A DNA stretch of 63,588 bases, counting the filler, from Hydrolagus affinis (lineage: Eukaryota): the NCBI GenBank assembly GCA_012026655.1. It is 4 parts of 4 records of this genome, joined end to end, with 100 filler letters (N's around TTAATTAATTAA, not from the genome) between each part and the next. Parts side by side here need not be neighbours in the genome. Positions count along the whole stretch, not along the records: positions 1 to 20,758 come from JAAILG010012898.1; 3 more parts are not named here. The stretch is one strand, 5' to 3'. Under the pieces are notes generated by a model. The model was given only the letters and a program-made list of their open reading frames with translations, did not search any database and had not been told where the DNA came from. Both the position numbers and the translations under genes were made by a program. Positions 521 through 20,137 of the stretch are shown here, piece by piece (positions within the stretch are counted from its first letter, which is position 1; each line of letters begins with the position of its first letter).

Positions 521-794
521 GGCTTGGCTCCTCCATTTTCTAAATGATACAGGAAAACCGGGAAAGGAATTTGCTGACATTGAGTGACATTGGGAAACAT
601 TATATTCAAATAAAATAAAGGTAAAGCTAAAGAAACCAGATCAAAGAAACAAATTGCAATGAGCAGAAAATGATCTGTGATATTGATAAGACATTTGACT
701 GCACTGCATTTCATCGACTGCTTGGGGGCACTCAAGTGACGTGACCAAATCTTTGTACTTTAGGTTTCTTACATTTATTTCATGCTGAATGTAT

Positions 795-1120
795 TAATAA
801 TAATCCTTGATTTGATATAACGCTTTTCATAATCACTTTTTATCGACGTCTCAAAGCGCTTCACAGAATATACTGTAAAGTGAATTGACTGTACGTTTGT
901 GGGCGAAACGCGGCAGCCAATTGCGCACAGCAACGTCCCACAAACAGTCGTGGATTGATAATGACCAATTTTTATTATTGTGTTGTTTTTGGACGGATTA
1001 TTATTAGGCGTGAGGAGCAAGGAAAGTTGCCCAAGGTTTCGACCTGATCTGCCTGGATTCGAACACAGGTCTCATGCTTGTAAGGCAAGTGCTTTAAACA
1101 CTGAGCTACAGGAGCTCCAC
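795..1120 (-). mobile_element. tRNA-derived SINE, DeuSINE/SacSINE1-like (representative copy; many more, e.g. 10760-11075, 13480-13800, 18300-18603, 19510-19812, 27375-27690, 48410-48700)
   Basis: tRNA-like head with A box (TAGCTCAGTG) and B box (GTTCGAATC), central TGTTTGTGGGACG..GCGCAATTGGCTGCCGCGTTTC domain, and L2-like tail ending in (ATT)n. Confidence 0.75.
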
Positions 1121-1869
1121 ATATACTGCAATCCCAATTTCCAAAAATAATTCAGTGATTATCTGCACTACAGAAAAGCATAAGCAATAGAAGCAAATTA
1201 CTACTGGAAACGAGCACAAAGCATACAAGTGTTGCAGTGATTCCCAGGTGGATCAGATTTCGGAAATCAGATTTCTGCTTGTGGACAGAATGAGGTGTTC
1301 AGCAAATTGGACACCACACCATGAGAAGCTATGTACATATAAATTGCTGTCTCCCAATTTATTCCCTCCTGACCTGCCTTACTTTCGGTGGCTGAGCTTT
1401 CAGCTTCTCTGCCCCCACCCTTGCCTCCTTCGAAGCCTGTCTGAAGTCCCTTCTTTTTGATCGTGCCTTCAGCCTCCCCCACTACCTCTCTAGCTCTCCC
1501 TTATCCCAACCCTGCCACGCTCTCCATGCTTGGGTCCTGACACCAACTGTTCAACACCTTTGGACATATTCCTGACGTGACAGGCGATCTAGAAAAGTAA
1601 TTTTGTTGTTGTTGTCTCATGTAAAATCTGTGTTTGGGGTGTTGGACAGTGCACATACTCTAATAATAATCCGTCCAAAAAAAAGCAACACAATAATACA
1701 ATCGGTAATTTCAATCCACGACTGTTTGTGGGACACCACTGTGTGCAATTGGCTGTCGCGTTTCACCCATAAATATACAGTCAATTCACTTTACAGTATA
1801 TTCTGTGAAGCGCTTTGAGACGTCTAGAAGACGTGAAAAGTGCTATATCAACTGCAAGGATTATTATGG

Positions 1870-2450: not shown

Positions 2451-5201
2451 TAATAATATGTGAAAATCCCACGTCTCATTAAATGTTGAAGTCACTAGTC
2501 ACAACTGTGTAAGCCTGATTGACTTCATCACCCATAGGGATAAAAAACAATCACTGATTCCACTTATTCCCATTATATATTGACCACTCTGGGGTGTAGA
2601 TGTCCAGTTATGCTTGTTGTGATGCTGTTGATGGTGAATTAGCCTGCACACACACACACACACACATACACACACACGCACGCACACACACACACTGTCT
2701 ATCTCGCTAGTGAAGATTGGGCCTTTGCGCATACTACAGAGGGAATAGAGGGCAGCATCCAACAACAGCTACAACAATTTGAATTATACACTGTGCCCCT
2801 CATGCAGGGTAGCGTCCTAAGGCACTTAAACATGCTGGAGGAGAACATATAATGAAAACACATTTCAAAATTCATCCTGCTCAGATGTGTTTATAATGTC
2901 ATTTATATTTGTACACTGAACTCCCCCCTCACCCCCCACCACCACCAATTTACAACTTAGTTGAATGATAAGCATTGTAGCAGAGTATCTGTCAATCAAA
3001 TAAGTCAATTGAAGGTTTTGTCCAGTAAAATTAAATTGTATAGCTTTGGGTTCCTGATTTGAATCCGGTCTAAAACGGGTCACTGCTGTGCACAATTGTC
3101 TGCCATATTTCATCCACAAATTTACAGTCAATTCACTTTACAGTATATTCTGTGAAGCGCTTTGAGACAGCAATAAGATGCGAAAAGCGCTATATCAAGT
3201 GCAAAGAATTATTATTATTATTATGACATTACAGTTCCCCACTAAAGCATTCTACACAGAATGATCTTGACTAATAAGCACAAAGCATAAAACTGGTTCC
3301 AAAGTTAGGACAAATTGTAATGAAATTGGGAGGTATAGTCCACAATAATGAATTGCTGGGATTTGAGAAATCGTACCAGTGGATACTGGGCATCCTCCGA
3401 TAACTATTTTAAATTTGCGACACACTGAATTTTTATACAAAATGTAGTATTTAAACAGTATGATACTAAAAAAAAATCAAACATTGACTTTGAATAAAGA
3501 TTTTTAAAGCAAACCTCCTATAGTGGCATTCTTGGCGGAGGTGAACATGTTCCTGACCTATGCAAACTATTGGCATTACATTAAGCAAACATCAGTATAT
3601 CAGTAAAAAGCAATTACGTCAACATCTAATATCCTTTGTCTCTTCAATCCATGTGGACAGCCAGTGACTGACTATTTTGCTGATTCATCGTTACCTCAGT
3701 GTACAGTACATTGTTGTCATTATGTACGATTCGATTTTCTGTAGAACCGGTCAGGTCTAATGTACATCAACTTCTTGATCTGGAAGGTAATGAGTTAAGC
3801 AGTTAGTTTATTGTCTTCACAATTGGGAAATTAAAAATTATGATTGGCAACGTTTTTGAAGTTTAACATAGTTCAGTTATTAAAAATTGCACTCCATTTA
3901 TTTTGGGGCCTGTTGACTCAGAAAGTTCAGTATATATATATATATATATATATAGTGCCTCTAAATATACACAACTTTTCTCGTTCTTTTTGGAGATTTG
4001 TGCTACTGGAATGCTGGAGTTTATCCAAATAATAGTTTGCTATTGGAAGACTTTCTACTGGTTTCCCAGCTAGTATAACCCTACCCATGAGGGCTTTTGC
4101 TTGTAGGATTGGAAAAGCTGAGTGGGAAAAATCCTTGCCTCTCTGTCTTGCTGACCAGTCAGGTTGGCTGTTTTGTCATCAGCAGTGCCCCCTGTGGACA
4201 CTCATATCTCAGGAACTGAACCGCTGAGATTGCTGCAGAGAATTGATTGAATTCCAATGTTCTGATGCCAAGTATATAATCTTGGAACAGGATCAGCTCC
4301 ATGGAGAATCCTGCTCTATCCCACTCTCCTCAGATAATAATAATTAGCGTTGCATTTCATATAGAGTCTTATCACACCATTAAGATGTCTTAAAGTTCAT
4401 CATAGGACACTCAGTAAAGTGGATTGACTGTGCATTTCATCGCCAAAAAACAGCCAGTTGTGCAATATAATATCCTGCAAATAACCAAGGAGAGAGTAAC
4501 CAATTTTTTATTTAAATGATGTTAGCCAGGGCATTTGAGAAACTCCCCTCTCTTCTCAAATAGTGTGGTGAGATCTTAAAATTCACCTAACAGGCAGATA
4601 GGACCTGTAGACATAATACAAAAGCAACAAATCATAGATTAATTGTAGGATATTTTCAGAAAACAAACTTGCAAAGATAGATTGATCACATTATTATGTT
4701 ACATTTGACACAGCCACAGAATGATATAAATATACCACATTTTCGCAATATTGAGCTTGACTTTTTCTCTATTTTCCTAGAATAAACAATACGAACATTT
4801 TCACAATAAATCATTGTCTCAGGAAGTAAATGCAACTAAGCCAACACCCACTCAGAATGGCATCTCACGTGATTTCTCAGACCGCAATTCCAGGGAATCT
4901 CACTCATTCCTTTTAATACTGTATTATAATTTCTTTAAGGCTTTGGAATCAGTAATGGTGGGTACAATGCTGAAATTATTTTAGAAATATCCATTCGCTT
5001 TCAACTCAATCTGTGATTTTCTTGCATTTCAAGAAATAAAAACCTATTGCACTAATTGGTAGCTGTAAAAAGTCTAATGGCATCAAAATCTTACTGTTAA
5101 CACATTGGATACCACAACTTTCTATTCTATTAAAAGTCTTTTCTATTCTCTCAAAGGATCTTTTGACATTTTCCTTTCCTCTGAATCAAAACGTTGTGGG
5201 T

Positions 5202-5580: not shown

Positions 5581-6800
5581 CAACAACAACAATAACTTGG
5601 ATTTATATAGCGCCCTCCAAGTAGGACGGCGTCTCGGAGTGCTTCCCAATAGCAGATCCCACGGCAGAGCCAGGGGAGGGGGAAAAAGGTGACTGAAAGC
5701 GCAGTCGCAAAGAAAGGTCTTTAGCAGAGACCTGAAAGTAAGAAGGGAGGGAGCAAGGTGAAGGGAGTGAGGAAGGGAGTTCCAGAGCCTCGGGGCCTAG
5801 TGGCTGAAGGTATGGCCGTTGATGGTGGAGCAGAGAATTCGGGGGACAAGGAAGAGGCCAGACCCGGTAGAGTGAAGGCAATGGGTATGGTTGTGAGGAG
5901 AGAGGAGGTCAAAGAGGTATGGGGTGTAGAGGAGTGGAGACATTTGTAAACAAGACTGAGGATCTTGAAATCGATCCTCTCCGGGACAGGGAGCCAGTAC
6001 AGTCTGGCAAGGACTGGGATAATTGGGGAGTGGAGTTTGGTACGGGTAAGAATGCGGACGGCAGAATTCTGGATGACCTGCATTGTATGAATGGTAACGG
6101 AGGGGAGACCGGTGAGGAGGGCATTTGAATAGTCCAGCCGAGAGGTAGCAAAGGCATGGACCAAGGTTTTGGCGGCTTTTGGGGTGAGATATTGGTGGAG
6201 GGGCGATGCATCGGAGACAGAAGAAAGTGGTGCTGGTGAGGGACGGATGTTGGGGAGGAAGGATAATTAGGGATCAAATCTGACACCCACGTTGCATATG
6301 GGTTCAGAAAGTTTCAGATCGGGTATTTGGAGGAGGTGAGAGCCATGGGATTGAAGAAGTTGACGAGAGCCAAAGATTATGGCTTCCATCTTGTCAACAT
6401 TGAGCTGAAGGAAATTGGCGCTCATCCAGCTCCTGATGTCTGACAGGCAGGCTGACAGAACATCAGGGGACTGAGGGTTGCAAAGTGAGGTGGACAAATA
6501 GAGTTGGGTGGCATCCGCCTACATGTGGAATTGTTCCCCATTTCTGCGGATGACATCCCCAAGAGGGAGCATGTGGATTAGGAAGAGGAGGGGGCCAAGG
6601 ATGGATCCTTGGGGTATCCCGCAGGTAACTGGGAGGAAACATTGTTTGTATAGATGTACCGCTGGTGGTTTGTGAGGTAGGACTCGAACCAACAAGTGCG
6701 GTCCCACTGAGGTGGATGACGGAGGACAGGCAGTGGAGGAGCATGTTGGGTCAAAAGTGGAGGAGAGGTTACCAGGGTGCCAATGGAGTCTGTCTAGCAA
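5581..6800 (-). mobile_element. L2 LINE, RT domain and 3' end
   Basis: ORF fragments [29 protein letters not shown] and HAFATSRLDYSNALL...LYWLPVPERIDFKIL; (GTT)n tail. Confidence 0.85.
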
Positions 6801-7177
6801 CGGGGAACCAGTAGAGTCTAGCTAGGTCCATCTTGGTGGTTGAACTCATTTTGCCTAGGCTGGACGATTGCATTGTTGAAGATACAGTGTTTCGTGTGAA
6901 ATATTAAATCAAGGTCCCATCTGTCTGTTCAGATGGATGATAAGGAGCGCGTGGCACTACTCCAAAAGAGAAGGAAGTTTCTTCTGGTGTCCAGACCAAC
7001 AATCACCCAAATATAGTTTGTCATTCACTTTGTGGCTGTTTGTTGGACAATATTGCAGGCAGATGTGATGCCACATTTGCCTGCTAAATACACAATAACT
7101 ACAATAATGATGTGAAGTGATTGAAGACATCACCCAGATTTGAAAGACATGAAATACTAGGATTATCAGTAACTTAC

Positions 7178-7291
7178 TTCCACAGTTGTTGAATTGACAT
7201 TGTTTCCAAATGATGAAGAGCAGGACAAGAAATGCAAACCCAGCCCCTCCACATCCAAATATCCATAAGGAAAGGGGAATATCGTTAATGG
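7178..7291 (-). CDS. Gene C transmembrane exon: (A)INDIPLSLWIFGCGGAGFAFLVLLFIIWKQCQFNNCG
   Basis: TCTTACAG acceptor, GTAAGT donor, 114 nt, phase 1-1, hydrophobic stretch followed by K; same strand and phase as the upstream C1 exon. Confidence 0.75.
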
Positions 7292-7639
7292 CTGTAAGAC
7301 AGTATAAAACATAAAGAATTTTAAAAAAAAACCAACAGCACCACAACTTTGGCTGTTTACCTCGAATTTATCATTAAAAACAATGCAGCGTTGCTGCCAA
7401 GATATCTATTTTTTAATTTTCCACATGTAGAAATCAGATCATGTGCTCTGAACTTCTAGTCTGGGGGAAATGTTACATTTTTAAGAGAAAATTGTCTTTT
7501 TATTGATCAGTTGATCGTTCAGCACCTTGGAAAGTCCTCCTGCCATGAAAGGCATTCTCTAGCATTTCATGAAAGGTGCCATACAAATGTGCAGTTTGTT
7601 GTTGTTGTTGTCGTCATTCTATTTATCAGTTGAGAATAC

Positions 7640-8780
7640 AGTAAATATTATTGGAGGAGAGGATGGGTGAGGCATGGGAAGGTGAATGGAGGAGATGGTT
7701 TGTGGTGGAGAAGAGGAGCCTGGGGTTATCCTTTGCCTCCAAGATTAACTTGGAGTAGAAAAAAGATTTAGTGGCTTGAGGGATGAGAGTTGGCTGATGT
7801 ACCAGGGGGAATTTACAGGAGTAAGAGAAGGTTCACGATGTGAGGGGGGACAAGGGAGTTGAGGATGGAGGAGAGGGATTTGCCAAGAAAAGAGGGCGAA
7901 GAGGGTAAGTCGGTTTGTGAGGGCCAGAGTGGCAGGAGTTCAGATGATTCCAGGGCAGCAGAGAGGGAGGGGAGGGAGATTTTTTCCAGGGGCCATAGGT
8001 GATAGCAGAGGATTGAGTAGGGGGAAGGCGTATGGAGGTTTTAAGGGAGATAAAGTGGCGGTCTGAAATGGCTTTATCAGTGATGGTGAAGTCCGAGATG
8101 GTAACCTGGGTGACCACCTGGTTAAGGGTGTGGTCATGGACATGTGTGGTGGAGTGAATGTGGATGGAGAGGTTAAAGGAGGAGGAGGGAGGAGAAGTCA
8201 CCAGTGGTAGAGCAGGAGGGGGTGTAGTGCCTAAAATTAGAAGGTGTTCAGAGCAGAGGGAGAGGGAAGATACGAGGGTGGAGATGTCCGAGAGGAAGGT
8301 GGTGGGGGGTTTGGAGGGATGATAGAGAAGGAGGATTTTGAGGGAGAGACTAGAGGGGTGGTAGTGAGTAAGGTACTCAAAGGAGAGGAAGCTTCTGGAG
8401 GAGAAAGAGAAAAGGCCAAGGTGGGACTGGGAGATGAGAACCATACCATCACCATGGCGGTTAGGCCATGGGGTTTGATGAAAGGTGTGGCCGGGTGGTG
8501 TGGCCTCAATAAGGGGAAGGTGTCCTCACTCCTGAGGACAGCACAGCCAGCCTGGCTTATCAGCAGGATCTAAAAGGGCAGACCAGTGACCAGGGGCAGA
8601 GAAGTATTCCCACTCACCTCCTCTTAGCCCTGTAAGCCAAAGCCCTAAATGGTAGGGTCATCTTAGCTGGACTAGCAGTGGGGAAGCTAGCCAGATGGCA
8701 CTATCAATGGCAAGTTATGTGGTTTTGGCTGGTTAGACTCCAGCATTTACCCTAACGCACAGTCTGGGGTCTCCAAGCCT
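7640..8780 (-). mobile_element. L2 LINE 5' part with APE endonuclease remnant
   Basis: Translation SFEYLTHYHPSSLSLKILLLYHPSK...LSLCSEHLLILG resembles the L2 endonuclease; many frameshifts. Confidence 0.6.
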
Positions 8781-9059
8781 TGGCTCTCGCTAACCTGGGC
8801 CTACTACTCTTGCGGAATTAGGTAAACAGGATCCATCCCTTCAGGGAGAGAGTGCACACATTCCTTTCCAACAATGTATCTCTGGGATTTCCACACCCTC
8901 AGGACTCCATTCCTGTAGCTCAGTGGTTAGGGCACTCGCCTCACAAGCGAGAGACCTTGGGTTCGATTCTAGGCAGGGTGAAACCTAGGGCAAGTTTTGT
9001 TACTCCCCACTCCTAACAATAATCTCTCAAGGAAAAAACAATAATACATTGGTCACTCA

Positions 9060-9880
9060 ATCCAAGACTGCAACAACAACAAAATGACATTTGTATAGCG
9101 CCTTTCACGTCAGGAGGACGTCCCAAAGCGCTAGACAGATACTACTTCAGACCTGAGGTGGGGACAGGGGGTGGGGAGGTGGGGAGAAGTTGCCGATGCA
9201 TCCATCGAAGAGGAGAGTCTTGAGGCGAGACTTGTAAGAGGACAGGGAGGAGGGCCGAGGTGGAAGGACTTTGGGATGGAGTTCCAGAGGTTGGGGACAG
9301 AGTGACTGAAGGCTTGCCCACCAATGGTTGGGCGGGTGGGTTGGGGGACATGGAGCAGACCAGAGGCTGCTAAATGGAGGGGGCGGGCAGGTTGGTAAGG
9401 GGTTAGCAGGTCACGGATGTAGGATGGGGCGAGGTTATGGAGGGCTTTAGATGTGAGGACCAGGATCTTGAATTGGATCCTCTGGATGATGGGGAGCAAA
9501 TGGGGTCAGGCAAGGATGGTGGACATGGGCTCCTGGAGTTTGGAATAGTAGAGGACATGGGCTACAGAGTTCTGGATTATCTGCAGCCTGTGGAGGGAGA
9601 AATTGGGAAGGCCGACCGACAAGGCATTTGCAGAATCGAACCGGGATGTAATGAAGGCATGGATGAGGGTTTCAATGGCTTTAGGGGTGAGGTAATGGTG
9701 GAGTCAGGAAATGTTGCGGAGGTGGGGAAAGCAGAACGAGTCATTGCTTGAATGTGATGGAGGAAAGACATTTGAAGGTCGAACAAGACACCTGATCCCC
9801 CATCACCTTGCTTCCCTCCACCCTCCCTATTCCGACCCCAGTGCCTTGGGATGTCCTCCCGACGTGAAGGACTCTCTAGA
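9060..9880 (-). mobile_element. L2 LINE 3' fragment
   Basis: RIQFKILVLTSKALHNLAPSYIRDLL...TIGGQAFSHSVPNLWNSIP. Confidence 0.75.
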
Positions 9881-11099
9881 AATGTAATTTTGTTGTTGTT
9901 GAAACAATGACTGTCCGGCGCCTTGGCACGTCCTCCCGACATGAAAGTCACTATACAAATAATTTAGGTGGTGTTGTTGCACTGCAAGAGATGATTTTCT
10001 TCAGATAAGATGTTAAACTGAGTTTCCATCTGCGTGTTTCGGCGGATGTCAATAGTGGCACTATTTGAAAAGAGAAGATAGTTTCTCTCAGTATTCTGGC
10101 CATCTCCCAAGTAAAATTGTTGACTCACTCCATAGTTGTTTATGGGACACTGTTGTTGTGCGCAACTGGCTGTCGATCCTCATCCTTGTCTTCAAATCCC
10201 TCCACTCCTCTGCAGCCCCCTACCTCTCTGACCTCCTCTCTCCTCAAACCAGCACCCATTGCCTTCACTCCACCAGGTCTGGCCTCCTCCATGTCCCTGA
10301 ATCCTCCGCTCCACCCTCGGTGACCGTGCCTTCAGCCACTATGCCCCGAGACTCTGTAATTCCCTTCCTCATTCCCTTCGCCTCGCCCCCTCTTTTCCCA
10401 GTTTCAGGTCCCAGCTGAAGACTTTCTCTTCGACCGCGCCTTTGGTCACCTTTGTACCTCTGCACCTGGCTCGGTCCCAGGGTCCGCTATTGTGAAGCGT
10501 TCTGAGACGCCGTTGGGCGTGGCTATATAAATCAAAGTTGTTGTTGTATTTCATCTACAGAAATAGACAATTAATCCACTTGATGGTATATCCTGTGGAG
10601 TGCTTTGAGGTATCTCAACCATGTTATAAGTTGCTAAATCAAATGCAACCATTTATATTATTATTCTTAACATTATAAGTATTTTTGAATAGTGACACAA
10701 GATCTTTAACATCCACCCAAACAGGCAGATGGAACCTTGGTTTAATGTCTCATCTGACGGATAATAATAATAATCCTTGAATTTGATATAGTGCTTTTTA
10801 CATCTTATCGATGTCTCAAAGCACCTCACCGAATATACCATAAAGTGAATTGACTGTATATTTGTGAGTGAAACGCAACAGCCAATTGTGTGCAGCAGTG
10901 TCCCATGAACAGTTGTGGATTGAAAATGACCAATTTTTGTTATTTTTTGGGGGAACGGATTATTACTAGGCATGTGGAGTAAGGAAACTTGCCCAAGGTT
11001 TTGCCCTGATCTGCCTGGATTCGAACACAGGTTTCACGCTTGTAAGGCGAGTGCTCTAAACACTGAGCTACAGGATGGCGCCACTGTTAATGCAATATA

Positions 11100-11735
11100 A
11101 CAACAACAACTTCGATTTATATAGCGCCCTCCATGCCGTACGGCGTCTCAGAGCACTTCATAATAACGGATCCTGTGGCAGAGCCAAAGAGAGGGGAATA
11201 AGGTAACCAAAAGTGTGGTCGAAAAAAAAGGTCTTTAGCTGTGACCTGAAAATGGGAAAAGAGAGGGCAAGGCAAAGGGAGTGAGGAAGGGAGTTCCAGA
11301 GCCTCAGGGTGTAATGGCTGAAGACAGGGAGCCAGTGAAGTCTGGCAAGGACTGGGTAATCGGGGAGTGAAGTTTGGTAAGGGTGAGCATGCGGGCGGCG
11401 GACTGTTGGATTTTGTGAGTGGTGGCGGAGGGGAGACTGGCGAGGAGGGCATTTGAATAGTTCAGCCGAGAGGTAACAAAGGCATGGACCAGTGTTTCGG
11501 CAGCTTTTGGGGTGAGATATTGGCGGAGATGGGTGATGGAAGAAAGCAGTGCTGGTAAGGGACCGGATGTGGGGGAGGAAAGAAAATTGGGGCTCGAACC
11601 TGACGCCTAAGTTGCGTACGGGTTCAGAGAGTTTTAGGGGAAGGTCGGGTAAGTGGAGGAGGTGAGAGCCGTGGGATTGAAGATGTCGACGAGAGCCTAA
11701 GAGTATGGCTTCCATCTTGTCAACATTGAGCTGAA
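11100..11735 (-). mobile_element. L2 LINE 3' fragment
   Basis: MEAILLGSRRHL...VRNLGVRFEPQFSFLPHI...LWNSLPHSL; paralogous to 5581-6800. Confidence 0.75.
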
Positions 11736-11967
11736 TATATCAATATGTTAGTTCTCCTTGAGGCTGAATTGACTCCAAGGTGAAATGCCTCACAGTGGAA
11801 TGGTGCAATGATGCCAGTGCTCTAATGGTAGTCTCGATAGTCTGGTTCCTGAGGCAGGTCCTCAGTATTCCAAGTCACTGCTCACCTAGCATTGCACTGA
11901 AGTGAGCTGAGTCTACGAGCCCAAAGATTCAATAGATATCTATGTTTAGAGAAATAAACGATCTTAC

Positions 11968-12279
11968 CTTGTTTAGAATCAGAAACAGTGTAAATAGCAA
12001 TGATTGGAGCTTTGAGGCTCAGGTGAGATACCAGACAGGTGTAAACAGTCCCTCTGTGGACAGGCTTTGTCTCTTCCAAGAAGCTTGAAGCTTTATAATC
12101 TCTCCCACCTCTCCCAAGCTGTTTGATTGTATTCACAGCCACAACATTCTTATCATCTTTATACCAAGTGATAGTGATATCTTCTGGGTAAAACTCATCC
12201 GTTTCACAAACTAGAGTCAGAGAGGTGGTTGAGTTCCCGTTAGACACTTTCGAGATTATTTTAGGATGCATCGGGGTAG
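11968..12279 (-). CDS. Gene C C1-set Ig domain exon
   Basis: 312 nt, phase 1-1, TTTTTTCACAG acceptor and GTAAGA donor; TLVCETDEFYPEDITITWYKD...YKASSFL...YTCLVSHLSL is the C1-set signature (C-x5-YP, W, YxCxVxH). Confidence 0.9.
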
Positions 12280-13809
12280 CTGTGAAAAAACAGAATAGAG
12301 AAGGAACATGCAAACCATATAATTTTGGAAACTGGAGCATTTATTCTCCAAAATATTCCATCCTTCCAGTGCAGTACAGTGATACAGACTATAATATTTC
12401 TGGGAACTGTTGAAATTTTCTTTAGGAATATCTTGAAATTAAATTGCTGTTACTAACATTAATGGAAATAATTTGACTATGTTGCAACAATGAATGAAAC
12501 AACAACTTGCATTTATATAGCGCCCTCCACGCTAGACGGAATCTCAGAGCGCTTCACAATAGCAGAGCCCGGGTCTGAGCCAGAGGGCGGGGGAAGGTGA
12601 CTTTAGGCGCACTCGAACAGAAAGGTCTTCAGGCGCGACCTGAGATGGAAAAATGAGGGGCTGAGGTGAAGGAATTGAGGGAGGGCGTTCCAGAGTTTCG
12701 GGACGTAGAGGCTGAAGGCATGGCTGCTGATGGTGGAGCGGAGGATTCGGAGAACGAGGAGGAGACCAGACCCAGTAGAGCGGAGGCAGTGGGTACTGCT
12801 GTGAGGAGAGAGGAAGTTAGAGAGGTAGGGGTGTGCAGAGGAGTGGAGGGATTTAAATACAAGAGTAAGGATCTTGAAGTCGATCTATTTTGTGACAGTG
12901 AAGTCTGGCGATTACTGGGGTAATCGGGGAGCGAAGGTTAATTCGGAAACAGCTGTAAGAGGCATAAGAGCTATAATACAGCAGTAGTAATGACAAAGGT
13001 TGAACTTGTAAATAGGGTTTCACAACTGTTAGTAGATGTATTCTATTACTCGACTACATTAGGAAGCTTAATGCACGAATGCTGCGGCTGGGTGGGTAAG
13101 GTTGATTAGATGATTTGACATCCTCCCTACGTGAAAGACCCAATATACAATAAATATAATTTGTATTTTATTATCAACAACACTCCGAGATTCAATGTAC
13201 ATCATTTTATATTTGTAATTTGTCAAGTTAGAGCGCTCTCCTCATAACTGAGAGACCTGAGTTTGATTCCCAGCGGGGTGAATTGTTGAGCAACTTTCTT
13301 TAGTCCACATTCTTCTGTTTACCTAGTAGTAAGTAGTTGATTGATAGATTGCTGTTCTGGGTGTAATAATTCCTTGAAAAAAATAATAACAACGATAAAT
13401 TGGTCACTTCAATCCATGATTATTTATGGGACACTGCTGCGTTTCACCCACCAAACACAGGTTCGGCCTCACCTGGAACATTAATAATAATAATCCTTTC
13501 ATTTTGATATAGTGCTTTTCATATCTTGTCAACGTCTCAAAGTGCTTCACAGAATACACTGTAAAGTGAATTGAATGTATATTTGTGGGCGAAACGTGGC
13601 AGCCCATTGCGCACAGCAGCGTCCCACAAACAGTCATGGATTGAAATGACCAATTTTATTATTGTGTTTTTTTTGGAGCGATTATTATTAGGCGTTTGGA
13701 GTAAGGAAACCGCCCAAGATTTCGCCCTGATCTGCCTGGATTCGAACAAAGGTCTCACACTTGTAAGGCGAGTGCTCTAACTACTGAGCTACTGGACTCC
13801 ACATGAGAA

Positions 13810-14330
13810 TATGAGTTCAGTTCTGGGCACCATACTTTAGGAAGGATACCAAGGGATTGGAAAGAGTTCAAAGGGGATTTAAGAGGATTGTACCAAGAAA
13901 GAGGTACTTCAGTTATCAGGAGAAGCTAGAAAAACCAGGATTATTCTCGTTGGAGCAGAGAAGGTTAAGCAAAGATGTAATAGAAGTTTTCAAAATTATT
14001 AGGGGATTTGATAGGGTGAACAAAGAGAAACTATCTCCAATGGTGAGTGGGTCAGCAGCCTGGGGACGCCAGTTGAAAATAATTGTTAAAAGAAACAGAG
14101 TGGAGATGAGGAGAAATACTTCCATGAGGCGATTTGTTTGGATCTGGAAGCATTGCCTGAGAGGTTGGTGGAAGCTGATTTGATAACAACGTTTAAGAGA
14201 GAAGTAGATCATTATTTGCAGCGCTATGGGGAAAGCGTGGGTGCGTGGGCTTGATTTGGACAGTTCTTTTCAAAGAGTCAGCACAGACACGATGGGCTGA
14301 ATGGCTTCCTCCTGCGCTATATAATTCTAT
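13810..14330 (+). mobile_element. CR1 LINE 3' fragment
   Basis: LERVQRGFKRIVP...SYQEKLEKPGLFSLEQRRL..DVIEVFKII. Confidence 0.8.
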
Positions 14331-14920
14331 TTTCGATGATTGTATAAAAATATACAGTCAATTGGGTGTCCCGTGGCTCCTTCCTGTTTGGGCGAAATCT
14401 TGGGCAAGTTTCCTTACTCCACATGCCTCACATGCCCATAATCCTTCAAGAAAAAACCCAATAATAATTTAGTTATTCAATCCATGACTGTTTGTGGGAC
14501 ACTGTTATGCGCAATTTGCTACGGCATTTCACCCACAAAATTTACAGTCAATTGACTTCACAGTATATAATGCAAAGTGCTTTGAGATGTCTACAAGATG
14601 TGAAAAACACTACATCAAATGCAAGGATTGTTGTTATAATTATTATAATTTACAGTATATGCTTTGAAGCACTTTGAGATGCCTCAAAGACATAATAAGG
14701 TGATGTATCAAATGCAAGGATTATTATTATTATTATTTAGGGAATTTCATTTACATTAACACTAAAAGGTAAAGTGCAATACTAAATGCAGATTGGCTTC
14801 AAATATTTATGGTACTTCATTTATTTTGTAGTATTCACAAACAGTGGTATTGAAAACCCCTCTCCTCTGGTGATTTAAGTTGAGATATGTGTTGAATAGT
14901 AGCAGTGGCCATTTACTTAC

Positions 14921-15235
14921 CGTGGACAACCAGTGATGTTCCAGTTCCATTTGTCATTCCTCTTTCCCAACATCTCACTCCACAGTGATAGGCTCCTGAG
15001 TCCTGGAGACTGATGTTCAGCAGCTGAAGGGAAGCTTCCCCACTCTGGGTAAGGAACCGTTTTCTGCCGTCTGAGCCCGGCTGGAGATACCCATTCTCAC
15101 CCAGTTTCCACCACTCAACAGTCACAGCGGAATTATCAGAAGGGGAGAAAATGCATTTGAAGGTAACATTGGCAGCTACGATGGCAACGGTGGTTTCAGG
15201 GGTTTGGGTCACTTTGAGGGGAACATCGGCAGCCA
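14921..15235 (-). CDS. Gene C pre-joined VJ-type domain exon, NKp30/SIRP-like
   Basis: 315 nt, phase 1-1, TTTGACAG acceptor and GTAAGT donor; VTQTP..VTFKC..VEWWK..ASLQLLNISLQDSGAYHC..NGTGTSLVV includes a J-like G strand in the same exon; no RSS seen. Leader exon not found. Confidence 0.9.
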
Positions 15236-18200
15236 CTGTCAAAGATAAATACAAACTTTATGTATATGTATTTATCAAATAATATAAAAACATTGATTAA
15301 GAGAACCATATCAAATACCTGGGCCAATGGCGAGAATCACGAGGTACAAAAACACAATCCGTTTCAAAATCATTTTGCGCAGTGTGGGTTGAAGCTTTCT
15401 ACAAATAAATTCAAAGCACTTTTGGGTTTGGGACAACTCAGTTTGTGTTTAATCTGATGCGATACACGACCAGGTGACACGTGATATCACAGCAGTGACA
15501 CCGTGAAGCTGCTGATTGAGTTGATGAGGGTGAGATGGGTGAGATGCAAATGTCCTTATTAGGCTGCAAGGTAACCTCCAAAGTTTGCAATCCATTCACT
15601 CTGATCCCCAGTGTATTGGCTATATCTGATGGAAAATATGTAACATCAGATAGATTGGGCGGAAATATTTTGTGTTTTGACCCCTTTGTTTAGATGAAAG
15701 AATTGGGTAACTGCAATCAATTGACAACCATTATTACGAGAGCAAAAGAATATTTCACAATCTCCCTTCACATTTCTAGGTTGTCAACAAAATATTTGGA
15801 AAATGTGTTACGTATTGCGATTTTCTTCATGTGCACAGGTGTCGCCAAGCTTCTTTCTAGAAATAACCACATACTGTACTATATAAATATTCAGTAACTC
15901 AAGCTACATGAACACTATAAACCCAACTGTTTTTTACATAGGAAATTTCAGCTTTCTTTGACTCACGAAATTCACCCATATCTGGGACTTAACTAGACTT
16001 TATCGTTTATTTTGCCAACAATATACATCGTCAATTCACTTTACAGTGTATTTTGTGAAGCACCTTCACTCGTCTCGAAAACATGAGAAATAAATAAATG
16101 ATATTTGTATAAAGCCTTTCAAGTTGGGAGGACGTCCCAAGCCGCTGAACAGTAGAACTGTTATATCAAATGCAAAGTTTATTATTATATTGCATATAAT
16201 ATTGCATATTTTGCATTGAGGCTTGAGAGAGCCACATAGGTTGTCTAGAAACATATTTTCTGGCAGGAAAACAAAACAAAACTGCACTTTGGCAATTATG
16301 TCAATAGATATTAATGGTTATCACCTCCAACCTGGTATTTCTGGGTTTGAAGGATTATGTTACCACATAAATATTGCAAAAATAATAATAATCCTTCAGT
16401 TTGATATAGCGCTTTTCATATCTTCTAGATGTCTCAAAGCACTTCAGGAGACACTCTGTAAAGTGGAGTGACTGTGTGTTATGTGGATTAAGCAAAATAT
16501 TTTATTACCCGATTGGATGATTAATAATATTAATTATTAGTATGATTAATAATCACTTCCCTACACGAAACAACGCTCACTCAATCTAGCGGAGATGCTC
16601 AACCCCGGAATTCTGACAAAATGTAATCTGTTGTTGTCTCAACGACATGTTAAGAAGAGGCTGTATGAAATGCAAGAGTCATTATTATTTATGATACTAT
16701 TAAGCTCCCTAAGACGCCATCCGACATGGAGATCGCTATATAAATCCAAGTTGTTGTTGTTGTAATAATCATGGAATTCTGTAGCTCAGTGTTTAGAGCC
16801 CTTGCCTAGCGAGTGAGAGACCAGGCAAAAAAATCACTTCACAGTATATTCTGTGAAGCGCTTTGAAACATTTAGAAAATATCAAAAATGCTATATCAAA
16901 TGCGAGGATTATTATTATTTTGCAATATTTATGTGATAACATAATCCTTCAAACCCAGAAATAACGGGTTTAGGTGATAATTGGAAGCCTTCTGCATTAA
17001 AGCCTGTCATAAAAGATAGGGAAATTAACTTCTCGTTAAATGTGTTTTGTAAAATCAACTGGCATGGTTCAATATTTTGATATGATTACATGAGACAGAG
17101 GTAAGATCATCTCATTGTGGGTAAAATCTATTCACACTCCTCTGATGTTTCTCTATATGCTAATACGTACTCTGGAGGTTGAACAGAATACAGCAATGTG
17201 ATCAACAATGACAACTTCGATTTATATAGTGCTCTCCACGCCGGACAGTGTCTCAGATCAGGAATGATGTGTTATTCGGCTCAATAGTCAACAACAACTT
17301 TATTTATAACACAAACAAATACTCGTGTTCCTAGAAGCTCTAATCACACACCTCGTTTGCTTGAACAGGTTTGATTGACACAGAATGATCAATACCATTT
17401 ATTAACTTCAACTGAACAATTGTGGCAATATATTCAGCCGATCAGTTGATGCCAATAACTACAGTAGGGAAGCCAGTATCTTGGGTAGAACCACATATAT
17501 GTCCCAGATTATAATTATCACTGAGAGCTGCAAACATGGTACAATGTGTCACATTATGTGGTAAATGTGGGTAAAACACTGCAGTGAATTGTGCACAGCA
17601 ATTTCCCACAAACAGTCATTGGTTGAGTGAGCAATTGTATGTATATCTATAGAATGTTAAGTCTCAATCATTTAGTCCAATTATTTTCCTATGTGCCATT
17701 CACACACAGAGTGAATAAATATTCCAGATATATTGCAATAATATATTGTTAGAGCCATACAGAGGTATAATTTAATTTTTAACGACTGTTGGTATGTAGC
17801 TTGCGGTATCAGGACTAAATGTTGCTTTACTTTACCACCGCTGAATACTTACTGGTACAAATGTGGAAGACAGTGTAAGTGACTCTCTGTCACACAGTAA
17901 CTATATTATGGTGCCTCGGGGATCAATATGAATCCTGCTCATTGTGTGTTTTTTATGCAATGATTAGTCCTGCTTTAATCACAGTGAATCATTTCCTCAC
18001 CTGAGGTGGCATCTGAGGTACTCTATCTATCAGCGGCAATGTATAACCATGTAATGTTTCAATGTTTCCACAGAGCATCGAAATAAATGACTCATACGCT
18101 GTTTCATTAATTGACTCCGCCTTTTGACCACTGGCTGAATTTGTTTCTCTTGCTGAATACTTCTGGTGCTGCTGCCCAAGTTTTTCAACAAGTTTATAGT

Positions 18201-20137
18201 ATTAATCGCTGGGTACTGGGTTTGGGGGCCAGTGATTTATGATCTACTTGAATTAAAACATTAAACTCCAACGAATAATTATGCACACCTTTTAATGCAT
18301 AGTAATAATGCTTGCATTTGATATAGTGCTTTTTATGTCTTCTAGATGACTCAAAGCGCTTCACAGAATATTACTGGAAAGTGAATTGACTGTAGATTGT
18401 GGGCAAAACGTGTGCACAGGAGAGTCCCACAAACAGTCATGGACTGAAATGACCAATTTATTATGATTATTTTTTTGAGGGATTATTATCAGGTGTGTGG
18501 AGTAAGGAAACGTGCCCAAGGTTTTGCCCTGACTGCCTGGAATTGAACCCAGGTCTCTTGCTTGCAAGGCGAGGGTTCTAACCAATGAGCTACAGGATTC
18601 CACTATATTTAAGGATAACCATGCAATCAGCCCTGAAATACTCTTATCCCCAGATGCCAGGGGTTTAACAGCACAGCCCCATCAGTGGCAGCATCATTGA
18701 GGATTTACAGAGATTTACAAAGGGAACATTGGTCTGTGGAGGGCAAACACCATTCGTATCATTGAATTTGAGTCTTGATTTCAGTCTTGAGACATTGTAT
18801 GCAACTGACTCAACACATCAATGTGAAAACCTTTTAGGCAACTGCCTGGAATGTGTGACAATATAAATAGGAGCACAACGATCCTGCTTAAGTTCATGAA
18901 ATTCAATTTAATTTAAACCAGTGAATAGATACAAAAGCATGTTGATTAAACACTTTAAAGAAAAAAACAATCTTTGCTTTGATTTCATCAAATGGAACGT
19001 TGCAGTGTGACATAGAAACAGATGCAATGAGACACATAGACTTCACTGATGGCCAACAAAAGTCTTTGCGGTGTGAGAGTGTAGCTGTGATACACACACA
19101 CACACACATCTATATATGTAGATGGAGATATATGCGTATACTTGTGAAATTGCTACACCTAAACAGGCACACGCTCCATCAGTTCATGTGTTGCATAAAT
19201 GGCCTGTGAGTGTGGACAATCGTGTTCTTTATTTAACCAGAGACAATGATAAAAAATAAATATTGCTTCATTTCAGCTACATTTTGCACATACTTGCATA
19301 ACGCCCACACAATAACCTTTACATTGTGGCAGATGAATTGCATCGCATTTTCTTAGAAACTGTTAAGGTTATTTATATCAGTTTATTTCTAATTTGAGTC
19401 TCTGTTCGTTAGTGTCATCAGATGAGCCAACATAATACAGTATAGTGAAACAAAACATTACCCTCACTGCACACACTGAACTGATATATATTTACTTCCA
19501 GCAGCATGTAATAATAATACTTGCATTTGATATAGCACTTTTCATGTCTTCTAGACATCTCAACGTGCTTCAGTATATACTGTAACATGTATTGACTGTA
19601 TATTTGTGGGTGAAACGTGGCAGTCAAATGCTCATAGCAGTGTTCCACAAACAGTAGTGGATTGAAATGATCAATTGTTTATATTTTATTTGAGAGATTA
19701 TTATTAGGCGTGTGGAGTAAGGAAACTTGACCAAGGTTTCACCCTGCCTGGAATTGAACCAAGGTCTCTTTCTTGCAAGGCGAGTACTCTAACCACTGAG
19801 CTACAGGACTCCACAAGACAGGATTTATCCATGAGGCAGCTCAAACTCGGGCTGAATAACTTTTAAATGTAACGGATTGAGAATTGTTTTTAGAATTGAT
19901 CACATGCTCTACATACAAATTTTGTAGTCATCAAACCGTATGTTTGTTGTTGAAATTGGCTACACAGACAATGGATTGAAGAGAGCTGGAATCAACTAAA
20001 GGCGGCTGCTTTTTGGCCAATAATTCAACTGACGATCAATCCTTGAAATGTTTGGATTTCCCAGAGAGAGAGAGAAACATTACTGAACCATATTCATTCA
20101 TCATAATCAAAACACAAAATACTAAAGATACTGGAAA

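Follow-up and report, generated by a model that had tools for sequence, protein, structure and literature searches.

A germline VJ-C1-TM receptor gene of Hydrolagus affinis and its family in cartilaginous fishes

Introduction

What kind of receptor is encoded by a chimaera gene that has the domain order of a single antigen-receptor chain and carries its V and J sequences together in one germline exon? The question is raised by a locus, called gene C here, in a 63,588-nucleotide (nt) stretch of DNA (the window, filler included) that joins four parts of four records of the Hydrolagus affinis genome assembly GCA_012026655.1; gene C lies in the first of these parts (the piece), positions 1 to 20,758, which come from JAAILG010012898.1. 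A reading made from the sequence alone had described the gene as a non-rearranging receptor composed of a VJ domain, a C1-set domain and a transmembrane (TM) segment, with a V domain resembling that of NKp30, and had predicted that it is a relic of the antigen-receptor ancestor from before the time of RAG. Non-rearranging genes with a one-exon VJ and a C1 domain are sought after as comparators for the making of antibodies and T-cell receptors (TCRs) by the RAG transposon, and they are said to survive only in elasmobranchs (PMC12227049). As explained below, the gene is intact and has an orthologue in the chimaera Callorhinchus milii, and it is assigned to a receptor family that extends to sharks, rays and skates and that might best be understood as a paired innate receptor system.

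Anatomy of gene C

Gene C is an intact, germline-encoded, non-rearranging VJ-C1-TM membrane receptor gene on the minus strand, which is the strand of all of its features listed in this section. The coding part of its leader exon (15319..15373) was read from the sequence as an ATG at 15373-15371 that opens a frame of 18 codons plus 1 nt (MILKRIVFLYLVILAIGP), followed by a phase-1 donor GT at 15318-15317, and it shows 87% nt identity with the start of the C. milii family member P0172, MILKQIVFLYLVILTIGT. The leader is split by an intron of 83 nt (15236..15318), whose GT...AG borders were read directly. The VJ exon (14921..15235), flanked by ...gacAG before and GTaagt after, encodes both a V-type immunoglobulin (Ig) domain and a J-like G strand, and is uninterrupted through the J-like motif NGTGTSLVV (14925..14951, with its G-x-G bulge) up to the GT donor. 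Within this motif, an N-glycosylation sequon (N-G-T) occupies the position of the Phe or Trp of rearranged J segments. That position sits in the interface of V-V dimers, and a glycan attached to the sequon would disfavour canonical V-V pairing.

The exon for the C1-set constant domain (11968..12279; borders cacAG and GTaaga) bears the motifs C..FYPEDI..W..YTCLVSH. As an observation on its donor, the frame that reads through it stays open for 28 codons in the window (11882-11967, minus strand) and for 7 codons in C. milii (L001:11781-11804). A further exon (7178..7291; borders tacAG and GTaagt, with a phase-1 donor; read from the sequence) encodes the connecting peptide and a hydrophobic stretch of 23 residues (LSLWIFGCGGAGFAFLVLLFIIW) with no charged residue and hence no Arg, after which the protein continues as KQCQFNNCG; in tblastn and blastp comparisons this exon matches the TM exons of homologues. 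The VJ, C1 and TM exons each begin and end in phase 1, and all of the junctions are AG/GT. The C1 exon is phase-symmetrical, so that its skipping would preserve the reading frame, and because the TM exon ends in phase 1, at least one further coding exon must exist on its 3' side. Pfam comparisons, like the other analyses of gene C, were made exon by exon, and assigned the V exon to the V-set (E=3.8e-9) and the C1 exon to the C1-set (E=3.6e-14, versus 0.047 for the C2-set model C2-set_2). A single C1 exon lies between V and TM, and with ten homologues as tblastn queries no further Ig exon was found anywhere in the piece.

A scan of both strands for recombination signal sequences (RSS; heptamer, 12/23 spacer and nonamer) found none at gene C and only one weak site at 17986, far off from it, where 0.32 such sites would be expected by chance. 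The sequence-only reading is thereby borne out in its exon arrangement, in the common phase of the exons, in the absence of RSS, and in the domain order of one TCR or Ig light chain laid out in the germline. What it omitted was the leader exon, with which the gene begins beyond the range that had been assigned to it (ATG at 15373).

On the 3' side, one weak candidate for a terminal coding exon (6904..6959, encoding IVPRAPYHPSEQTDGTLI and then a stop) came from a scan for conserved acceptors. Its acceptor, a strong polypyrimidine-AG site, lies 218 nt downstream of the TM exon, and both this acceptor and the length of the open reading frame (ORF; 18 codons) are kept in C. milii, but 9 of its 18 residues differ and the sequence is unconstrained. 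The candidate overlaps repeat-like sequence and shows no homology with elasmobranch cytoplasmic exons, and it is not established as an exon. On the 5' side, a putative promoter region (15374..15700) is more conserved than the surrounding non-coding DNA: its alignment with C. milii, leader exon included, shows 89% nt identity, versus about 75-82% elsewhere. An Ig-type octamer ATTTGCAT upstream of the ATG (15544-15551, minus strand) was considered and rejected: it occurs at chance frequency, and the orthologous position in C. milii has no octamer, although that species also has one upstream of its ATG at a non-orthologous position (L001:9910-9917, plus strand).

The orthologous locus of Callorhinchus milii

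By sequence comparison, gene C is the orthologue of C. milii XP_007902906 (P0172), which NCBI has named "tapasin-related protein-like". The V exon was used as the query of an exhaustive HMMER search, and family profiles were used in additional ones; the closest protein was P0172, which shares 80% amino acid identity with gene C in the V domain, 72.5% in the C1 domain and a near-identical leader. Conservation between the two genes extends to the ATG, to all of the splice sites and to the frame of the TM exon, and the TM exon with its conserved splice sites has 93% nt identity. The whole 20.7-kb piece is collinear with the C. milii scaffold MU249845.1 (locus L001, 15.21 Mb), introns and flanks included, in blocks whose nt identity varies between about 65 and 90%, with non-coding DNA mostly at 75-82%. 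This collinearity identifies the piece, at the level of sequence, as the orthologous locus of another holocephalan, and makes an old duplicate the less likely explanation. Clear one-to-one orthology with an already described gene was one of the two findings that the sequence-only reading had named as able to refute it; a clear orthologue does exist, but it bears only a machine-given name and is not a described gene.

A receptor family of cartilaginous fishes

Beyond this pair, gene C is assigned by its similarity in both domains to a clustered multigene family that is seen only in cartilaginous fishes. The named members that were found with HMMER and profile searches all come from sharks, rays, skates and the chimaera C. 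milii, and the members from each species lie on one contig. Their NCBI names are inconsistent and include SIRP-beta-like (SIRP-beta-1-like), SHPS-1-like, NCR3LG1-like, TAPBPL-like, Ig-lambda-like, MHC-II-beta-like and CD276. Gene C shares 45-80% identity with family members in the V domain and 40-72% in the C1 domain, similarity being significant in both, and it carries the family motifs of each (WWKxGE...NG[TS]G in V and FYP...W...YxCxVxH in C1). Across 52 V domains of the family, four positions (G96, G98, L101 and V103) scarcely vary, and NG[TS]G is present in 75 of the 89 family proteins. The exon plan of gene C is shared with the C. milii locus and with a locus of Heptranchias perlo (L002), where the member P0155 has the same succession of leader, V, C1 and TM exons, followed by two tiny cytoplasmic exons; the boundary of the TM exon is the same in the H. 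perlo model (…SNCK|G) as in gene C (…NNCG|).

A likelihood tree of 62 V-C1 ectodomains pairs gene C with P0172 (support 99) and places both in a clade of 13 members (support 98) with genes of Heptranchias, Heterodontus, Mustelus, Scyliorhinus, Pristis, Mobula and Leucoraja. The presence of elasmobranch genes within this clade implies that the subfamily predates the split between chimaeras and elasmobranchs. The clade stands apart from the main expansions of C. milii and thus from most paralogues of that species, in agreement with the earlier view that gene C is of a different subfamily from two other genes (A and B).

Three kinds of tails are found in the family: long tails with several motifs that resemble immunoreceptor tyrosine-based inhibitory or switch motifs (ITIMs or ITSMs), short tails behind a charged TM segment, and short tails behind an uncharged one. 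The clade of gene C is of the last kind. The C. milii members P0164 (long ITIM tail) and P0170 (charged TM segment …IIIVDY… and short tail) reside on the same 18.1-Mb scaffold and have near-identical V-C1 ectodomains, with branch lengths of 0.014; judged by these sequences, they look like a classic pair of inhibitory and activating forms, the hallmark of paired receptors. Forms with V, TM and ITIM but no C1 domain also occur in the same clusters, and some of them are isoforms of V-C1 genes. A conserved Cys at the TM boundary, considered as a possible dimerisation signal, is present in the subfamily of gene C, but in only 17 of the 48 family members that were scored.

The V domain and the question of NKp30

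The structure predictions were confident, with AlphaFold2 (AF2) models of a predicted local distance difference test score (pLDDT) of 90.7 for the V domain and 86.8 for the C1 domain, and their matches are to an antigen-receptor-type V and a classical C1. The V domain is short, with 57 residues between its cysteines and no C' or C'' strands in the AF2 model, a shape that fits its matches to the shark VNAR. When the V model was compared with the PDB in Foldseek, VNAR, CD79b, NKp30 (rank 11), PD-1 and the light-chain variable domain (VL) were matched with near-equal E-values and 22-27% identity; against Swiss-Prot, the order was CD79b, Ig-kappa V, NKp30, CD7 and TCR V-alpha, with NKp30 at ranks 4, 7, 8 and 10. 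VIA-align gave Z scores of about 15 to VNAR, TCR V-alpha and VL, at 25-30% identity, and the 50 best entries did not include NKp30. In a phmmer search of PDB sequences with the V sequence, VNAR, pIgR, CAR, TCR-mu and a light chain were among the 60 best matches, and human NKp30 was not. On its predicted model, then, the V domain is structurally closest to shark VNAR, TCR V-alpha and VL, and NKp30 appears to be no closer. The description of the V domain as NKp30-like thus finds no specific support, NKp30 being one of many equal Foldseek matches (23-25% identity) while VNAR, TCR V-alpha and VL match equally well or better.

These comparisons bear on the possibility that gene C is a member of the published shark family of NCR3 (NKp30) genes, that is to say, an NKp30 homologue that has kept a C1 domain. 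Kinlein et al. 2021 reportedly described such a family with eight divergent subtypes in the nurse shark. A kinship of this kind might account for a VJ-type V domain whose J-like strand bears an N-G-T sequon like that of NKp30, for the ranks that NKp30 reaches in the Foldseek comparisons, and for the V-TM-ITIM forms without C1 in the clusters of the family. It would have to contend with the absence of human NKp30 from the best phmmer and VIA-align matches, with a TM segment that has no Arg, and with the result of four large searches, in which no NCR3-named protein appeared among the matches; those aimed at NCR3-named or nurse-shark proteins, whether queried with the profile of the family, with a bamboo-shark sequence from it or with aligned V-TM forms, brought back family members alone. 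The map positions of the relatives speak in the same direction. On white shark chromosome 19, which ends near 116 Mb, NCR3 genes adjoin AIF1 and PRRC2A, and on sawfish chromosome 34 three "NCR3-like" genes adjoin ddah2 (Veríssimo et al., PMC10751288 gene tables), whereas the white shark member of the present family resides on a contig of 193.5 Mb and the sawfish members on one of 53.95 Mb, and the complete list for chromosome 34 is without any name of the family (PMC10751288). Judged on these white shark and sawfish relatives, the family lies elsewhere than on the MHC chromosome that carries the annotated shark NCR3 genes. We consider it rather unlikely that gene C is an NCR3 gene.

The C1 domain and the question of SIRP

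Among PDB sequences, the best single-domain match of the C1 exon is the beta-2 domain of MHC class II, with 49 bits, where IgM and UrIg2 reach about 22 bits per domain. The C1 model matches the MHC class II beta-2, ZAG alpha-3, Ig delta and Ig light-chain constant (CL) domains in Foldseek and VIA-align (VIA-align Z 13-14), and the nearest counterpart of the C1 domain is MHC class II beta-2. Searches of PDB sequences with the family profiles were dominated by multi-domain proteins and were uninformative. For the two-domain Atlas model of the orthologue, the best match is a SIRP-alpha cluster, with a TM-score of 0.81.

This last match, together with the many members that NCBI has named SIRP-beta-1-like or SHPS-1-like, allows for a true kinship, in which gene C would be a cartilaginous-fish homologue of SIRP with one C1 domain instead of two. 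It is established that SIRP likewise combines a VJ-like V domain and C1 domains with paired ITIM, charged and short-tail forms. Yet neither domain taken singly has SIRP among its 30-50 best matches, the family has only one C1 domain, and the automatic names vary inconsistently from member to member. We regard homology with SIRP in this strict sense as unlikely.

Is gene C a working membrane receptor?

It might also be asked whether the locus is a decaying pseudogene in H. affinis, or the source of a secreted V-C1 protein only, with its TM exon unused. Several observations point that way and count against a functional membrane receptor. No RNA run with the V exon was found in the run searches, and the C1 and TM exons attracted zero reads in three single-cell RNA runs of a near-identical organism (tissue unspecified), while all of the RNA reads on the stretch fell on short or long interspersed elements (SINE/LINE repeats). 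The RefSeq model of the C. milii orthologue (231 amino acids) ends by read-through seven codons past the C1 exon and has no TM exon. Tblastn with the tails of seven homologues found no cytoplasmic exon after gene C in either species, the only ITIM exons in this search being those of the upstream neighbour gene in C. milii. At a dS of 0.21 between gene C and P0172, dN/dS is 0.55 in V and 0.53 in C1, so that selection on these two domains is only mildly purifying. Finally, such function as may be attributed to gene C is attributed entirely by analogy.

Decay is hard to reconcile with four open exons whose ATG and splice sites are conserved in two species at this degree of divergence, or with an overall dN/dS of 0.48, at which non-synonymous changes fall below the neutral expectation (binomial P=0.0026). 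An unused TM exon is hard to reconcile with the dN/dS of 0.18 in the TM exon (P=0.04 for this exon alone) and with the elasmobranch orthologue models, which include it. The read-through model of C. milii implies that a secreted V-C1 isoform is possible, beside or instead of the TM form, and read-through at the C1 donor may represent either such an isoform or an annotation artefact. Expression of the exons and their joining in one mRNA are predicted for H. affinis, the joining with support from their matching phases, from the conservation of the splice sites and from the gene models of homologues. A locus that no longer works as a membrane receptor therein is, in our estimation, quite improbable.

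Origin and proposed mode of action

That gene C derives from a rearranging Ig or TCR cluster, with V and J joined in the germline by RAG rather than never split, is very improbable indeed. In its favour, germline-joined Ig genes do exist in cartilaginous fishes, VNAR, TCR V-alpha and VL are the nearest structural neighbours of the V domain, and a short intron splits the leader. Against it, identity to any Ig or TCR V domain is only 25-30%, the C1 domain resembles MHC class II beta-2 more than it does the constant domains of Ig or TCR, the family and its invariant NG[TS]G J-like motif are older than the split between chimaeras and elasmobranchs, and the RSS scan found no remnant. Germline joining has been mentioned for UrIg as well (PMC12227049). 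The opposite idea, that the VJ-C1-TM family is a never-rearranged, membrane-bound sister lineage of the TCR and Ig-light-type chains and a survivor of the pre-RAG stock that is also present in chimaeras, strikes us as doubtful; no result described here makes gene C a relic of the antigen-receptor ancestor, an idea that the present results neither support nor contradict.

The interpretation that we prefer, and hold to be reasonably probable, is that gene C is intact and encodes a type I membrane glycoprotein, in a family that constitutes a paired innate receptor system. The protein would have a signal peptide, a single VJ-type V domain and a single C1-set domain, together with an uncharged TM segment, a Cys-rich juxtamembrane stretch and a putative short tail, which is probable because the elasmobranch orthologues have short tails. 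By analogy with SIRP, NITR or KIR, the members of the family might work as paired innate immune-type receptors, in which the membrane-distal V domain would bind ligand and the ITIM-bearing members would recruit phosphatases. Gene C itself might then resemble SIRP-gamma, as a non-signalling or partner-dependent member that could serve in adhesion, as a decoy or as a co-receptor.

Surroundings of the gene

In C. milii, the upstream neighbour of the orthologue is P0054 (LOC103185896; L001:1-4546), a V-TM receptor without C1 that has the same kind of V domain, a TM segment and an ITIM tail, with its tail exons mapped at L001:1691-4543; its H. affinis orthologue would sit just outside the high end of the piece.

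A tRNA-derived SINE of 250-330 bp, shared with C. milii, is present in at least 10 copies in the window (792-1121, 1660-1867, 3077-3224, 8911-9070, 10761-11075, 13474-13812, 14390-14648, 16378-16486, 18299-18603 and 19509-19815) and takes essentially all of the RNA reads. Rfam and ARAGORN recognized tRNA-like heads at 1049-1111, 8909-8981, 11011-11073, 13734-13792, 18533-18595 and 19739-19810. ORFs on the minus strand at 5721-6164, 9131-9499 and 11158-11715 carry the motif "...LHWLP...FKIL...", typical of retroelement-derived sequence, and ORFs of this type fill much of the intron between C1 and TM and of the region downstream of the TM exon. A (GT)n-type microsatellite at about 2499-2765 appears as a "VCVCVCVC" ORF.

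The DNA run X1 comes from a sample that is about 3% diverged from the window and that probably represents a different individual or a sister species. Its contigs differ from the window near the exons at 7214, 7288, 12010 and 12142; read as codons, the differences include amino acid changes of I to F and I to S in the TM exon and of A to T and V to L in the C1 exon, and in one case the change brings back the residue of C. milii.

Significance

The family presents a minimal one-chain layout (VJ, one C1 and TM) in chimaeras, sharks and rays, as a multigene group with inhibitory and putatively activating forms, and it has been hidden in public annotation under contradictory machine names. If it is not yet catalogued by specialists, it might provide a further outgroup for trees of V and C1 domains, and a candidate for an innate receptor system of the SIRP or NITR kind at the base of the jawed vertebrates. 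Within this family, gene C would be one conserved, short-tailed member with an annotated orthologue, its tail being taken as short from its likeness to the elasmobranch orthologues.

Comparison with known systems

NKp30 (NCR3), like gene C, is a type I receptor with a non-rearranging VJ-type V domain and an N-G-T sequon in the J-like strand, and V-TM forms are found in the clusters of the present family as well. However, NKp30 has a V-stalk-TM architecture without a constant domain, whereas gene C has a C1 exon between V and TM; the TM segment of NKp30 has a positive residue for pairing with CD3-zeta or FcR-gamma, whereas that of gene C is uncharged; and NCR3 lies in the MHC class III region by AIF1, LST1 or DDAH2, whereas the relatives of gene C are on other contigs. 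In the matches given above, the V domain of gene C appears no nearer to that of NKp30 than to VNAR, TCR V-alpha, VL or CD79b. TAPBPL has a large N-terminal tapasin domain before its Ig domains, in contrast to the leader-V-C1(-TM) layout of gene C and its orthologue, in which Pfam recognizes Ig-type domains only.

Elasmobranch UrIg and UrIg2 share with gene C a single-exon VJ, a split leader, C1-type domains and the lack of rearrangement, and UrIg2 also occurs in a TM form. The C domains number three in UrIg and nine to eleven in UrIg2, and both are single genes reported in elasmobranchs only (PMC12227049). The family of gene C differs from them in having one C1 domain, in being a multigene family with ITIM and charged-TM forms, and in including chimaeras. 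The C domains of UrIg2 are among the top PDB sequence matches of the C1 exon, although below MHC class II beta-2 in bits per domain, as given above.

PRARP is said to have been first identified in chicken, as an MHC-linked locus, by Fu et al. 2019. In the account given by a citing paper, the PRARP genes are non-rearranging VJ genes regarded as remnants of the antigen-receptor precursor (Fu et al. 2019 as cited in PMC10751288), and it is in this descriptive sense, as non-rearranging VJ genes, that they may be likened to gene C. The TCR chains and Ig light chains resemble it in their V(J)-C1 order (plus TM in the TCR), in their split leader, in the V-domain Z scores of about 15 and in a C1 fold like that of Ig CL. 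Their separate V and J segments with RSS contrast with the V and J that are contiguous in the germline of gene C, without RSS, and gene C further differs from them in the N-glycan sequon at the J Phe/Trp position and in the lack of charged TM residues for assembly with CD3.

Gene C is therefore not NKp30, by its architecture, by its TM segment and by the map position of its relatives, nor is it TAPBPL, UrIg or a rearranging receptor. The closest parallel is SIRP (SIRP-alpha, -beta and -gamma), which shares with the family a V domain with a J-like strand, one or more C1-set domains, a TM segment, and members with ITIM tails, with charged TM segments and with short tails; it differs in its V-C1-C1 ectodomain, compared to the one C1 of gene C, and in its occurrence in tetrapods, compared to a family found only in cartilaginous fishes. 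By this analogy, the family resembles a paired innate receptor system, and probably functions in the manner of one, with SIRP as its nearest likeness in architecture.

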